From IMG/VR virus record IMGVR_UViG_3300003877_000001, positions 186,001-250,000 of that record: a stretch of 64,000 nt of DNA; one strand, given 5' to 3'. Made by a program: the position numbers and the translations under genes. Below, piece by piece: positions 5,482-16,680 of the stretch. The notes beneath the pieces were generated by a model. The model ran no database searches, had not been told where the DNA came from, and was given only the letters and a program-made list of their open reading frames with translations. The stretch's first letter is position 1. Each line of letters starts with the position of its first letter.

Positions 5482-5967
5482 ATGGGATATACACATTATT
5501 GGACTTCGAAAGTAGTAAGCGAAGATAAGTTTAAAAAGTTTGCAGCTACTTGTAAGAAATTATATAAAGCATTACCAGATACTAGCGAAACTGCTAGTGG
5601 TTGTTATTCAGATGATGAAATAGTAATTTGTGGTGGTAATGGGAAAGGAAAACCATTGTTCAGAAATGATGAAGTTTGGTTTAACGGAGATGATAAAAGA
5701 GGTCTTGAAGCTTTTTGTATCGAACTAGAGGATAAAGATTATAATTCTTGTAAAACAGAAAGAAAACCCTATGACTTACTAGTTGTAGCCTGCTTAATTG
5801 CAGCACATGAAATTTTAGGGTATGAAATTACAAGTGATGGAGATTTTGAAGATTGGAAACTAGCAATAAATTATTATCTTCGTACATTATATACTAAGAT
5901 GCCAAACGATGAAGCAATTAAATTAATTTTACCAGAATTCATATATAAAGAATATTGTAACCTTTAG
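5482..5967 (+). CDS. Conserved hypothetical phage protein
   Basis: MGYTHYW start, CKTERKPYD motif. Confidence 0.75.
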   Translation: MGYTHYWTSKVVSEDKFKKFAATCKKLYKALPDTSETASGCYSDDEIVICGGNGKGKPLFRNDEVWFNGDDKRGLEAFCIELEDKDYNSCKTERKPYDLLVVACLIAAHEILGYEITSDGDFEDWKLAINYYLRTLYTKMPNDEAIKLILPEFIYKEYCNL

Positions 5968-12111: not shown

Positions 12112-12591
12112 ATGAATAAGATTAACTATGTAACTGGCGATGCTACTAACCCTCAAAGTGACGGCTTTAAAGTAATAGTGCACGTGTGTAATAACATTGG
12201 AGCATGGGGTGCAGGTTTCGTTATGGCACTGAGTAAGAAGTGGGATCAACCTGAACGTGAATATAGAGAGATGAACCACCGTGACTTAGGTATGATCGAT
12301 CTTGTGCAGGTTCAGGACGACATTGCTATATGTAATCTAATAGGTCAAGAAGGGACGATCAAACGTAATGTAACCCGTAACCTTCCACCAGTAAGATACG
12401 TAGCTATTGAGAAGGGTCTTCAAGAACTAGTCGCCATTAATTCTTATAGACATCCTAATGACAAACTATCTGTCCATATGCCAAGGATTGGTTCTGGACT
12501 TGCAGGTGGTAACTGGAAGATCATCGAGACTATCATAGAAGAAACTCTATGTGCAGCAGGTATTGAAGTAACAGTATACGACCTGCCATAG
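12112..12591 (+). CDS. Macro domain protein (Poa1p/DarG-like ADP-ribose processing)
   Basis: GDAT, VHVCNNIGAWGAGF, MPRIGSGLAGGNW. Confidence 0.9.
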   Translation: MNKINYVTGDATNPQSDGFKVIVHVCNNIGAWGAGFVMALSKKWDQPEREYREMNHRDLGMIDLVQVQDDIAICNLIGQEGTIKRNVTRNLPPVRYVAIEKGLQELVAINSYRHPNDKLSVHMPRIGSGLAGGNWKIIETIIEETLCAAGIEVTVYDLP

Positions 12592-12793
12592 GACATCCTA
12601 AATGAAAAACTCTCATGGGTGTGAGAGAATTATAAACTTTTAATTAATAATATTATGATAATAGGATTAATAATATTACTACTACTATCAGGTAAGATAA
12701 TTCATAACCTAATTAAGATTGAAAGAATTCATATAAACATTAAATCAATCATGGAAGAAACTCAAAAAAAAATCAATAACTTTAAATAAAAAT

Positions 12794-13177
12794 ATGACAA
12801 AACCAAATTTAAATATACCTAATCATACTGAAGAGTTAATGAACATCCTTACACTAAGTAAGAAGTCCTATGATAACTATTTATATGATAAGACCCTTGG
12901 ACATGTAACCTCAAGGAAACGTAAAACGTATAAGTATATCTTTGAGACTTATCTCTATGCAGTAGCTGATCTATCACTGAAAGTGAATGCTATCCAGAAA
13001 GACTTAGAGAACCACTACGCTAGGACGTACAAAGACTCACCAGCATTAGGTAATAAACTATACTATGAAGAGTACTTCGATCTACATAAAAAATATGATA
13101 AGGTGAAACGTTTCATCTGGAAAGCAATCTTTAAAATAGATGGAAACGAAAATATCCAACCAGATATTCTTATTTAA
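12794..13177 (+). CDS. Hypothetical protein
   Basis: ORF with A-rich leader. Confidence 0.65.
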   Translation: MTKPNLNIPNHTEELMNILTLSKKSYDNYLYDKTLGHVTSRKRKTYKYIFETYLYAVADLSLKVNAIQKDLENHYARTYKDSPALGNKLYYEEYFDLHKKYDKVKRFIWKAIFKIDGNENIQPDILI

Positions 13178-13202
13178 AAATATTATCTAGTGCGATCTAC
13201 CC

Positions 13203-13232
13203 AACCCCTTGCAGTTAATTTTGTAAGGGGTT
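13203..13232. terminator. Hairpin at end of the + strand gene block
   Basis: AACCCCTTGCA...TGTAAGGGGTT. Confidence 0.55.
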
Positions 13233-13382
13233 CTATTTGTCTACAATGTCCAACCTCATGATCACAATGTACATCATATTGTCCATGATAACATAGGATA
13301 GTCTTAACATTTCATTAACGAATCAATTCGTACCATATTGTATCATTATTAACACATTATTCTCCGCTAATGAAAAAACCCA

Positions 13383-14167
13383 TAGGACATCCTACGGGTT
13401 TAATCATTCCAAACATGCAAGTACGTTTTCGTACAATACAAACATACAAATAAAAAAAGTCATAAGCAAGAGAAGATGGGATTATTATTTTTAACTAAGA
13501 ATGTTAATACTCGTTGCTTACGACTAAGAGTGGACACCTAAAAATAAATACCCACACATTTCAAAACAATCTTAATTAAGGATATTGCTAGGGACATTGA
13601 TGTCCCGAACACCACATTGTCCAATCCATTAGACAACCCACATTGTACACTCTCATAGGATAGCCTACATAGTAATTGCAATAACTATCATAGCAACCAG
13701 TGCTATATAAATTATTGCTTTTCCATAGGATGTCCTAATTTTAGTTCATCATATATAATACATATCCCATACCAAAAACGTAACTCGTTGTTCCTATGGA
13801 ACTTAACTTTAGGATGTCCTAAGTAATTCCCATTATTGGAAGTTCTTTGTCCCATAATGGGACAAGACATGACGAATTTCATGGTCTTAAATTATTAGAG
13901 AATCGGCTTCGGGCATTTCTACCCTTTGTTGAGAAGCAAGTAAATTATTATGTTTATTTAGGTTATCCTAGCCTGACATTTTTAATTAAGAATATATAAT
14001 TTTTTATAAAATCGAGTTTGAAATTTTATAAAAGAGATTTTTAGTACATGTAGCGACCCAAAAGTGGGTGAAAGTGGTAGGATGTGTTTAATTGTGGTGT
14101 AGAATTAAAAATTTTATGTTATTTTGTTGTTTTATTTATATTTAAATACTCTTTTTAGGATGTCCTA
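13383..14167. repeat. Cluster of TAGGA-NN-(T/G)CCTA palindromes in a non-coding region
   Basis: Copies at 13383, 13656, 13726, 13810, 13959 (variant), 14156; also 11495 and 12589 overlapping TAG stop codons. Confidence 0.8.
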
Positions 14168-14270
14168 AAAGGAACAAAACAAAGGTGTTTTTAATAAAAA
14201 TGGAACATGAAAGAACCATAAAAGTACTACTTCATTTCTACATTAGTAGTTGTTAGGTCAGGGTAATTTA

Positions 14271-14693
14271 GTTGTGATCACCTTACAAAATGTGATAATA
14301 ACCAACCTTGTGCTCACGGTGATGTTTTATTTGACTTGTTGTGATCACCTTACAAAATATGATAATAACCAACAGAGTAGGTTTTATTTTGATAAGCAAG
14401 TAAGTTGTGATCACCTTACAAAATATGATAATAACCAACATATTCCTATTGTTATTATTGTTGTGATCACCTTACAAAATGTAATAATAACCAACCTATC
14501 TTATATACCAACATCTCTTGCCGAGGTTGTGACCACCTTACAAAATATAATAATAACCAACTCCAAGAGCCAACATTCGCAACCACGTACTGTTGTGATC
14601 ACCTTACAAAATATGATAATAACCAACGAGGATGTAGAGTTGGATTATTACCGCTTAGTTGTGATCACCTTACAAAATATGATAATAACCAAC
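14271..14693 (-). CRISPR. CRISPR array: 7 x 36-nt repeats, 6 spacers (31, 30, 20, 30, 30, 30 nt)
   Basis: Plus-strand consensus GTTGTGATCACCTTACAAAATATGATAATAACCAAC starting at 14271, 14338, 14404, 14460, 14526, 14592, 14658 with unique spacers; GTTG...CAAC ends; - orientation inferred from the adjacent gene and repeat-family similarity. Confidence 0.97.
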
Positions 14694-14919
14694 ATTATTA
14701 GAGATAAATCACTAATTATGAACAATTTATATTGTGAAATAATATTATAAATTTGTAAGGTTCTACCCCATTATCATATTATCAATCCATTTTCATGTTT
14801 CTAATACTAGAAGCTATATTTTACGTGGATATCACACTACCCAATCGTTAATTTATAATATTCAATAAGTTAAAGAACTTGTTATTACACTACAAATGTA
14901 GGTAAATAAATTGTAAATA
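14694..14919 (-). ncRNA. Candidate leader / tracrRNA-like (omegaRNA-derived) region
   Basis: Contains segments complementary to the repeat at 14752-14761, 14770-14780 and 14816-14836. Confidence 0.4.
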
Positions 14920-16515
14920 TCAAGAGTTTATATATTTATTTTTAATATTAATTGCAGCATTAAAATCTGCATTATCTTCATGACCACATTTAGTACATTT
15001 AAAATTTGATTGATTAGTTCTATTATTAGAATCTATATTACCACAAACAGAACAAGTTTGTGAAGTATATGCAGGATCAATAAGAATTACTTCTTTACCA
15101 AGTTCTTTAGCTTTATATTCTAATTGGGTTTTAATTGTATTCCAACCAATATCTAGTATAACTCTATTAAAGTTCTGTTTAGATTTACTACCTTTAATAG
15201 TCATATTTTTTATATTAAGGTCTTCAAGAACAAAAGTATTATTATTTTTATTTTTGGTAAGTGTTGAAGTTATATTATGTTGTTTATTATTTCTAATATT
15301 AGAAATTTTAGTATTTATTATACCTAATTTATGTTTTATTCTTTTATATGAATTAGTTAAATAAAAATCTATATCTGTTTTATTTTTTTTATAATAGTCA
15401 TATTTTTTATTAAGTATAGTAGATAGTTTTCTTTTTTCTTCAGCATATTTTAATAGAACATCAAATCTATTTGCAAATATTGGATTATTAAAATCATTAA
15501 TATTTGAAGTTGTTATAGGTCTTTCAACACCTAAATCAATTCCAATGGTTGTTTTATCATTAGTGTGTTTAATTGAATAATTTTCAATATTGGTAATTAC
15601 CTGTATAGATATGAAGTATTGATCTTGCGAATTTTTAGATATAGTATAAGAATTTAATTTAAAAACATTAACATCATTCCACATATTAATAAACAATTTA
15701 TTATGACAAACCATTTTAATTTTTTTTAATTTAGGAATATTAATAGTAACGAATTTACTACCATTACTTATTATTTTAAATGGGGAAATATTACCATTAT
15801 AATTATATAGTATTTGACCAGTAAAAGAGTATGTTGAATTTCTATTTTTAAATTTAGGATAACCTGAATGTGTTTTCCATATTTTAGTAAAAGCATTATC
15901 TAAATTTTGTAATGTATATGATCTAGTAGTAGCATCAACATTTTTTAAGAATCCATATTTAAGGATACCATTTTCATTAAGTTCATTAGAGTTAGCCAAT
16001 ACAGTTAGTTCTTTAGATGCTTTATATTTATTAAAATATAAATCATTATCTTTCATATATTTTCTTCTAGCAACACCAATATCCTTAATTAAAGATTTAT
16101 AGTAGAGCATATGATCTATATCACCAGACTCATTAATATATTTAAAGAAAGAAACAATAAGAGTATCTTCAGTATCTAATTCTATTTTATATTTTTTTAA
16201 ATAGTTGTTAAACTCTTTAGAATCATTTAAATACTTATTTGTAAATTCATCTGAAATATCTTGTTGTTGTCTTAGAAAAGTATTATAGATAAAATTAGAG
16301 GTTCTAACAGCATCATCAAAGTATTGTATTTGTTTTTTATTAGGATAAATCCTAAACTTCAAAGCCTTATTTATTTTTTTTAGTTTAAATGATTTAATAT
16401 CATCTAATATAATATTATCATTTGTTAGAGAAGTTCCAATACCCTTTTTATTTACTTTGATAATATTGTGTATTGTGTTATTTTGTAAAGTAACAATATC
16501 ATTAGGTTGTAGCAT
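14920..16515 (-). CDS. tnpB: CRISPR-associated TnpB/Cas12f-like RNA-guided nuclease (531 aa)
   Basis: KALKFRIYPN (HTH_OrfB), GYPKFK, RuvC-I IGIDLG, RuvC-II VLEDL, Zn finger CSVC...CTKC, RuvC-III NADFNAAINI. Confidence 0.9.
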   Translation of the reverse strand: MLQPNDIVTLQNNTIHNIIKVNKKGIGTSLTNDNIILDDIKSFKLKKINKALKFRIYPNKKQIQYFDDAVRTSNFIYNTFLRQQQDISDEFTNKYLNDSKEFNNYLKKYKIELDTEDTLIVSFFKYINESGDIDHMLYYKSLIKDIGVARRKYMKDNDLYFNKYKASKELTVLANSNELNENGILKYGFLKNVDATTRSYTLQNLDNAFTKIWKTHSGYPKFKNRNSTYSFTGQILYNYNGNISPFKIISNGSKFVTINIPKLKKIKMVCHNKLFINMWNDVNVFKLNSYTISKNSQDQYFISIQVITNIENYSIKHTNDKTTIGIDLGVERPITTSNINDFNNPIFANRFDVLLKYAEEKRKLSTILNKKYDYYKKNKTDIDFYLTNSYKRIKHKLGIINTKISNIRNNKQHNITSTLTKNKNNNTFVLEDLNIKNMTIKGSKSKQNFNRVILDIGWNTIKTQLEYKAKELGKEVILIDPAYTSQTCSVCGNIDSNNRTNQSNFKCTKCGHEDNADFNAAINIKNKYINS

Positions 16516-16680
16516 AAATATTTATTTAAAGATTAAAAGACAAATATAGAAATATAAATTGATTAATGCAATAATATTAAACATAATACTTTTCAATTAT
16601 AGTTTCTTAGGTATTATAAATTCTAAGGTAAACTCCAAAATATGTACTATTATATGCTCCCATATTAAAATGTAATAAAC

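Follow-up and report, generated by a model that had tools for sequence, protein, structure and literature searches.

The window analysed here is a 64,000-nucleotide stretch covering positions 186001-250000 of a 325,854-bp virus record, and a search of sequencing runs matched this record to hydrothermal vent metagenome contigs. The locus under study appeared in that search only in DNA contigs of one hydrothermal-vent study, and 0 RNA runs carried the sequence. The 326-kb phage genome holds one TnpB-like gene and one CRISPR array; a search of the genome found neither Cas1 nor Y1 TnpA, and a phage GenBank collection gave 0 matches to the locus, the array or the spacers. Gene and array adjoin, and everything at the locus is read on the minus strand, in the order effector, promoter-like element, candidate tracrRNA, short leader and seven-repeat array. 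The features are as follows:

14920-16515, minus strand: effector gene (P0001), 531 aa, TnpB-like RuvC nuclease
14893-14925, minus strand: candidate Bacteroidota-type promoter, with -7 box TACATTTG (14900->14893) and a -33-like TTGA about 21 nt upstream
14744-14889, minus strand: candidate tracrRNA of about 140-146 nt, its putative 5' end placed from the promoter, with a conserved core at 14865->14746
14869-14880, minus strand: conserved 5' motif AAGUUCUUUAAC (family consensus AAGUUCUUUGAA), from the alignment
14827-14842, minus strand: hairpin GGGUA-GUGUGA-UAUCC with a covarying stem, carrying anti-repeat AR-1 in its loop
14799-14812, minus strand: small internal hairpin UUCUA-GUAU-UAGAA, from alignment and MFE structure only
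14770-14780, minus strand: fragment 2, AAUAUGAUAAU, 11/11 complement of repeat positions 9-19
14752-14761, minus strand: anti-repeat AR-2, ACCUUACAAA (also written CCUUACAAA), complementary to repeat positions 18-27 (UUUGUAAGGU)
14744-14751, minus strand: U-rich tail UUUAUAAU (AUUUUUAUAAAU in relatives), 3' of AR-2, possible tracrRNA 3' end
14694-14743, minus strand: leader from tracrRNA to first repeat, poorly conserved between loci
14271-14693, minus strand: CRISPR array with 7 repeats of 36 nt (GUUGGUUAUUAUCAUAUUUUGUAAGGUGAUCACAAC on the minus strand) and 6 spacers

Judged from its sequence, the effector is TnpB-like with intact RuvC residues. It contains HTH_OrfB (N-terminal region), OrfB_IS605 and Cas12f1-like TNB domains, the RuvC residues D327/E431/D517 and a CxxC...CxxC zinc finger, and both D327, E431 and D517 and the zinc-finger cysteines are invariant across 22-23 homologs in the clade alignment. 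Against the NCBIfam models, it scored 213.4 bits for guided_TnpB (NF040570), above the cut-off of 100, and fell below the cut-offs of the IS200/IS605 TnpB equivalog NF038281 (180 bits vs 425) and of Cas12f2 (NF049972; 94 bits vs 450). The best PADLOC match was Cas12u4 (E 1.2e-39, residues 45-526), and the PADLOC Cas12f HMMs, which carry no curated cut-off, matched at 1e-36. For an AF2 model of the effector (pLDDT 81.6), the best Foldseek matches were the TnpB structures 8iaz and 8h1j, followed by Cas12f (E 1e-16). Two regions of the protein are missing from nearly all 22 homologs: an N-terminal extension of about 47 aa (residues 1-47), where pLDDT is below 50, and, behind the first long helix, some 50 inserted residues (about 100-150). 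A single RuvC effector adjoining a CRISPR array is the generic arrangement of a type V system.

The repeat copies start at 14271, 14338, 14404, 14460, 14526, 14592 and 14658 and enclose spacers of 31, 30, 20, 30, 30 and 30 nt; the array was not reported by Tandem Repeats Finder. On the minus strand, the repeat RNA ends in ...GAUCACAAC and is followed by the spacer. The effector-proximal repeat equals the consensus and the distal repeat (14271) carries one substitution, so a leader on the effector side fits. None of the 30-31 nt spacers matched elsewhere in the phage genome with up to 6 mismatches allowed, and the PAM-proximal 22-mers of spacers 6 and 5 had no exact match in IMG/VR. Spacer 3 (14440-14459) is 20 nt long, vs 30-31 nt for the others, and the arrays of the related loci L011, L014 and L173 likewise contain units that are short or irregular, which suggests internal deletions. 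Beyond the distal end of the array lies an ORF-poor stretch of about 1.1 kb in which five copies of a 12-nt palindrome, TAGGAYRTCCTA, cluster (12589-14170; copies at 12589, 13383, 13726, 13810 and 14156). The palindrome has 9 copies in the 326-kb genome, including two more in the window at 5965 and 7814, and could act in regulation, in termination or as a site for protein binding.

A second vent sample (run X2) contained DNA contigs of a strain about 90-97% identical to window positions 13900-16600. Flanks, effector, leader and AR-2 are present in this strain, and across the leader and AR-2 region (14667-14772) it differs at 1 of 106 positions. The window's spacers had no coverage in X2, as might follow from spacer turnover; missing contig coverage is no proof, however, and this is weak evidence at best.

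We gathered related loci with a word-index protein search, which gave a clade of 22 proteins of 425-487 aa with 38-49% identity to the window effector. DNA was available for 12 clade members, and to these we added L013, which is the same phage as L010, and L014, whose 31%-identical effector lies on a 640-kb viral contig. The comparison set comprises 13 related loci, or 14 with the window, with effector identities of 31-49%. Scans of IMG/VR, metagenomes and GTDB with the family alignment returned mostly ordinary TnpBs at 24-39% identity, and only L013 and L014 were useful. Among the 185,579 species genomes of the GTDB no relative was as close, the best being Bacillota TnpBs at about 28-33% identity.

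The 13 relatives and the window share one layout, on one strand: a TnpB-like RuvC nuclease of 430-530 aa, about 200-260 nt of noncoding sequence, and 36-nt repeats. Nine loci have several repeats, L175 has one, and the remaining four contigs break off within the first repeat or shortly beyond it, two of the set stopping inside it. Several Logan contigs stop inside the first repeat, as expected at an array. The relatives' arrays lie on the same strand as the effector and have a period of 66 nt, and their repeats end in ACAAC, GCAAC or ATAAC. Because gene order and strand are common to all relatives, we read the window's array and candidate RNA on the minus strand. The earlier note on this DNA had allowed that any transcript running through the interval could pair with the repeat; the relatives narrow this to the effector strand.

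That note had drawn attention to 14694-14919 on the basis of three matches to the reverse complement of the 36-nt repeat, proposing a tracrRNA there. The matches are as described: on the plus strand they read TTTGTAAGGT (14752-14761), ATTATCATATT (14770-14780), and ATATTTT (14816-22) followed, after 8 nt, by ATCACA (14831-36). An inverted-repeat scan independently listed the first two as 100% complementary to repeat copies. Since the interval has a GC content of only 22.6%, a chance test was required. Of 5000 dinucleotide-preserving shuffles, 7 produced two exact matches of at least 10 nt within 226 nt, and 78 produced a longest match of 11 nt or more. When other 226-nt windows of the 64-kb window were examined in both orientations, none of 1112 had two matches of at least 10 nt, and 43 had one. 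The interval contains no same-sense match to the repeat of at least 8 nt. The two exact matches thus exceed chance despite the AT-richness; the note had called the clustering notable.

The simplest alternative is that the matches are chance products of AT-rich sequence in an interval with no RNA function. The low GC content speaks for it, as do the lack of conservation of the 11/11 match and of the ATATTTT half-match and a duplex energy no better than that of shuffled sequence. The shuffle and window counts speak against it, and above all the interval is conserved and covaries with the repeat in 14 loci whose effector identities of 31-49% show that they are not assembly copies of one sequence. 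We consider a pure chance origin extremely improbable.

The 14 loci align over about 140-160 nt of noncoding sequence. A leave-one-out nhmmer profile built from the 13 other loci had a single match in the 326-kb genome, at 14865->14746 on the minus strand (E 7.6e-11). Landmarks conserved across the loci include the 5' motif, the AR-1 hairpin and an AUUGAU. The GUUCU of the 5' motif may pair with AGAAC (14762-14766) and so close the RNA, a candidate pairing taken from the MFE structure; both sides are conserved, so the pair shows no covariation. The hairpin at 14812->14799 is a shortened version of a longer stem-loop in relatives. Rfam gave no credible family at E <= 10, and a consensus terminator scan found no hairpin-type terminator.

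Folding of the window's sequence by itself said little. The candidate tracrRNA has a fold z-score of only -1.45, and RNAalifold on the MAFFT alignment recovered the AR-1 hairpin as the only stem. Co-folding with the repeat, proposed earlier as a check, proved uninformative for one AT-rich sequence: tracrRNA and crRNA gave 0 predicted intermolecular pairs, and the best tracrRNA-repeat duplex energy was matched by 282 of 1000 shuffles. Because the sequence is so AT-rich, these nulls are no argument against a tracrRNA.

AR-2, about 10 nt long, lies directly 3' of a conserved GGGGUAGAA motif (14761-14769). Over the 14 loci, its duplex with the repeat of its own locus averages -9.2 kcal/mol, vs -4.7 kcal/mol with foreign repeats, and 0 of 20000 permutations did as well. 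For 13 of the 14 loci, the best AR-2 duplex maps to positions 17-28 of the own repeat or directly beside them. Both partners have changed between loci, from ACCUUACAAA/UUUGUAAGGU in the window to ACAUCUCAA/UUGAGAUGU in L174 and ACCACUCA/UGAGUGGU in L014 (AR-2/repeat).

AR-1 is the hairpin loop UGUGA (14836->14832, plus U at 14831), complementary to repeat positions 34-30 (29), AUCACA. This contact is of pseudoknot type and sits just upstream of the spacer, two nucleotides away. The stem that presents it has 0 non-pairs in 70 cells and compensatory changes at pairs 4 and 5, where the inner pairs switch among UA/CG/GU and among AU/GC/UA/CG/GU. In the 12 loci with a complete repeat, loop nucleotides 2-6 form 59 of 60 possible pairs with repeat positions 34-30. 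There are 8 distinct loop/repeat combinations, including UGUGA/UCACA, UGUCA/UGACA, UAUAG/CUAUA, UGCAG/CUGCA and UGUAA/UUACA; the pair types UA/AU and GC/CG/GU switch together, and 1 of 50000 permutations reached the total. The loci are related, so some of the agreement would be shared descent, but the 8 AR-1 combinations argue against descent as its sole cause. The interval thus holds a noncoding element whose anti-repeats are conserved together with the repeat, as is generic for a tracrRNA, and both AR-1 and AR-2 change with their own repeat across the 14 loci, in a covariation analysis such as the earlier note had proposed.

The proposal of three anti-repeats stood in part. The first match (14752-61, AR-2) and the ATCACA half of the third (14831-36, AR-1) are family-wide; the second match and the ATATTTT half are not conserved. 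In relatives, the counterpart of fragment 2 pairs with its own repeat at -5.67 kcal/mol vs -5.44 kcal/mol with foreign repeats (p = 0.35), and that of the ATATTTT half does no better with own than with foreign repeats (p = 0.41); we rejected both as conserved anti-repeats. Fragment 2 is predicted in the MFE structure to be paired inside the tracrRNA, with 14855-14869. It could form no continuous duplex together with AR-2, because it lies 5' of AR-2 and its target in the repeat also lies 5' of that of AR-2. Chance or internal structure probably accounts for fragment 2 and for the ATATTTT half-match. The strongest-looking anti-repeat, with 11 of 11 positions, can therefore be the wrong one, while the conserved contact is a 5-bp loop.

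Another alternative is a nuclease that needs no tracrRNA, its repeats folding on themselves as in Cas12a or Cas12j, with the intergenic element a leader or regulatory region. In most repeats of the family the 5' and 3' ends are indeed complementary to each other and an inner stem can form, giving hairpins predicted at -3 to -9.5 kcal/mol, and leaders are often conserved between related arrays. A leader leaves unexplained why two segments that lie apart, one within the loop of a hairpin, covary with the repeat, and because this covariation would stay unexplained we disfavour a crRNA-only mechanism. In the window, L174 and L014, moreover, AR-2 does not copy the 5' half of the repeat itself, and the nearest structural relatives (TnpB, Cas12f, Cas12p and TranC) all use long scaffold RNAs. 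We consider this alternative very unlikely. In the pre-crRNA, such self-hairpins would nonetheless be in competition with the pairing to AR-1 and AR-2: repeats that self-fold using the same nucleotides have more possible structures than tracrRNA pairing.

The stretch between the candidate tracrRNA and the first repeat is itself variable among the loci. In L010 (4476-4541, the same in L013) and L012 (4520-4566), a degenerate 'repeat 0' that keeps the repeat 3' tail directly follows the tracrRNA U-run, and is itself followed by a 30-nt spacer-like segment and then the first full repeat. The window's counterpart is faint, consisting of a UCACAAU in the leader (14736->14730) that resembles the repeat 3' tail. 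L175 (3405-3621) has a full tracrRNA-like element and a single repeat with no array, and its contig reads straight through. It resembles a split guide carrying a single fixed spacer and may represent a stage between omegaRNA and CRISPR array.

A further alternative is that the scaffold is not transcribed independently but belongs to the effector mRNA as its 3' UTR, or to a long effector-scaffold-array transcript, from which the nuclease would process it, with the same pairing. TnpB is reported to process its own mRNA into omegaRNA (PMC10278001), and the consensus scan found no hairpin terminator separating gene, scaffold and array. In L014, the most distant of the relatives that have an array, the stop codon of the effector lies inside the conserved 5' motif, GUUCUUUGA (L014:3878-3889), a layout nearer to the overlapping gene and omegaRNA of TnpB. 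In most loci, by contrast, some 40 nt separate the stop codon from the start of the scaffold, and a TAnnTTTG box between the two is kept in 10 of 13 loci. Processing from a longer transcript is, on balance, unlikely, while deserving more weight than the crRNA-only alternative.

The count of 13 leaves out L014; in the 10 loci the exact TAnnTTTG lies 29-64 nt upstream of the hairpin and is aligned in most, and six loci have a TTTG or TTGA about 21 nt further upstream. The window's candidate promoter reaches into the effector stop codon. In the X2 strain, the changes close to the -7 box hit an 'n' position or lie immediately beyond the box. PMC4747536 cites TAnnTTTG at -7 as the consensus of Bacteroides promoters, and the conserved box hints at an independent promoter, its function inferred from this resemblance, and at a Bacteroidota host. 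The host inference is weak because TAnnTTTG is only modestly enriched upstream of the phage's ORFs (43 vs 25 in control orientation).

Taken together, 14744-14889 on the minus strand very probably encodes a tracrRNA of about 140 nt, belonging to a stand-alone type V CRISPR system on the 326-kb phage. This reading rests on two short segments that change in step with the repeat across 14 loci. The proposal of a tracrRNA between effector and array is thus supported by a conserved noncoding element, two covarying anti-repeats and a TnpB-like effector. In the model that we propose, the tracrRNA would make two contacts with each crRNA repeat, both within its 3' two-thirds. AR-2, at its 3' terminus, would form a 10-bp duplex with repeat positions 18-27, and AR-1, in the loop of the 5'-proximal hairpin, a pseudoknot-type helix of 5-6 bp with repeat positions 30-34 (29). 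The two contacts together would rebuild an omegaRNA-like scaffold, and the spacer would serve as 3' guide for RuvC cleavage of complementary DNA. The comparisons show the conserved element and its strand, the hairpin, and the covariation of both contacts with the repeat, whereas we infer where transcription starts and ends, crRNA processing, nuclease binding, DNA cleavage and the PAM.

To place the system among known ones, we compared effector, locus and guide RNA with each of its nearest relatives. The layout, a duplex with the middle of the repeat (R:AR-2) and a short pseudoknot (PK) helix at the repeat 3' end by the guide (R:AR-1/PK), is of a known kind, shared with the guides of Cas12f, Cas12p and TnpB (omegaRNA). 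PK pairing with the repeat 3' end is described as characteristic of Cas12 tracrRNAs and of TnpB omegaRNA (10.1101/2025.01.20.633832). Like Cas12f (AsCas12f 7wju, 8j12; Un1Cas12f1 7c7l), the phage system pairs a miniature RuvC and zinc-finger effector with a tracrRNA between effector and array that would have a terminal anti-repeat and a pseudoknot at the repeat 3' end. Unlike Cas12f, its effector resembles the solved Cas12f structures only in the C-terminal RuvC/Zn region, and TnpB structures match it better by Foldseek. Cas12n (V-U4) likewise has a miniature TnpB-like effector with a tracrRNA, and Cas12u4 was the best PADLOC match. The Cas12n structure 9j09 matches only effector residues 285-525 (E 7e-15) and lies outside the top 50 Foldseek hits; the Cas12n tracrRNA lies in the region of its unstructured C-terminal tail, whereas the phage scaffold starts after the stop codon.

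Cas12p ('Cas12 hacker') is phage-encoded and has a 118-nt tracrRNA with a PK (R:AR-1) at the repeat 3' end (10.1101/2025.01.20.633832). The two systems are alike as phage-borne, early TnpB-like intermediates (Cas12p being 500-700 aa) with a PK at the repeat 3' end. The Cas12p structure (9jfs), however, shares 12-14% identity with the effector by Foldseek and gave no phmmer match at E <= 1 in a PDB search. The Cas12p PK is a conserved AAAC:UUUG at crRNA -1 to -4, whereas that of the phage system would be UGUGA:UCACA, of CACA type, at -3 to -7. An effector with no phmmer match to 9jfs, repeats ending in ACAAC and a different PK motif place the phage system outside Cas12p.

TranC comprises TnpB-like effectors associated with a CRISPR array, as defined in PMC13565253, and its 'functional RNA splitting' refers to tracrRNA and crRNA as a split omegaRNA (Jin et al., Cell 2025, as summarised in PMC13565253 and 10.64898/2026.03.27.714800). 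The phage system is alike in having a TnpB-like, TnpB-sized effector adjoining an array with no other cas genes, and in a guide made, by our reading, of tracrRNA and crRNA; according to the same sources, TranC repeats are 32-38 nt long and some TranC members lie in phage genomes. The effector is nearer to TnpB than to the established Cas12 subtypes and comes with an array, which is the operational definition of TranC, the clades being compared here via LaTranC alone. LaTranC itself (9jfo/9jfq) is distant, with a phmmer E of 1e-8 over the C-terminus and 14-16% identity by Foldseek.

TnpB (ISDra2 8h1j; ISFba1 8iaz) provides the best structural matches and also carries its scaffold at the gene's 3' end or downstream of it. 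The phage system differs from TnpB in that its terminal stem would be made in trans by two RNAs and its guide would come from an array; unlike a transposon-borne TnpB, it lacks TnpA, and the 326-kb genome holds no further TnpB copy. The nearest cellular TnpBs, from Bacillaceae (L183, L190, L184, L196, L208 and L210, at about 2560-2760 in each), have a sharply bounded omegaRNA, conserved right up to ...GAGUAGUUCAA and no further. It closes with UAGGAAU, then a strong terminal stem-loop and then an 8-nt tail that leads into the guide, and its fold z-score is -5.45. The phage order of GUAGAA, AR-2 (in trans with the middle of the repeat), repeat tail and spacer parallels this omegaRNA end, and by this analogy the phage layout fits a split within the terminal stem-loop of an omegaRNA, as proposed for TranC. 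Because the tracrRNA profile found no related element beside about 160 viral and metagenomic and 80 GTDB TnpB loci, the parallel is one of architecture and not of shown sequence homology. The idea of a split omegaRNA, raised in the earlier note, thus fits at the level of architecture only.

In the collections searched, members of the clade were confined to metagenomic contigs of phage or viral type, of which some measure 320-640 kb. The system behaves like a TnpB-derived type V system of TranC or Cas12f type and is a further example of a known sort of system. More tentatively, it may belong to an undescribed clade of TnpB-derived type V effectors of 430-530 aa, each with its own promoter-driven tracrRNA, in which several stages of omegaRNA splitting are preserved; we hold this as a possibility short of an even chance. 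Those stages, if true, would be the solo repeat-guide of L175, the degenerate 'repeat 0' of L010/L013 and L012, and the full arrays, as in the window. The analysis yields a testable guide-RNA design for phage nucleases of about 430-530 aa, comprising the limits of the tracrRNA, its two anti-repeat contacts and the orientation of the crRNA, and such a design is usually missing when small effectors are mined for genome editing. With the Bacillaceae TnpB loci as a useful outgroup for reconstructing the split, the phage loci form a natural set for studying the passage from TnpB omegaRNA to tracrRNA and crRNA.
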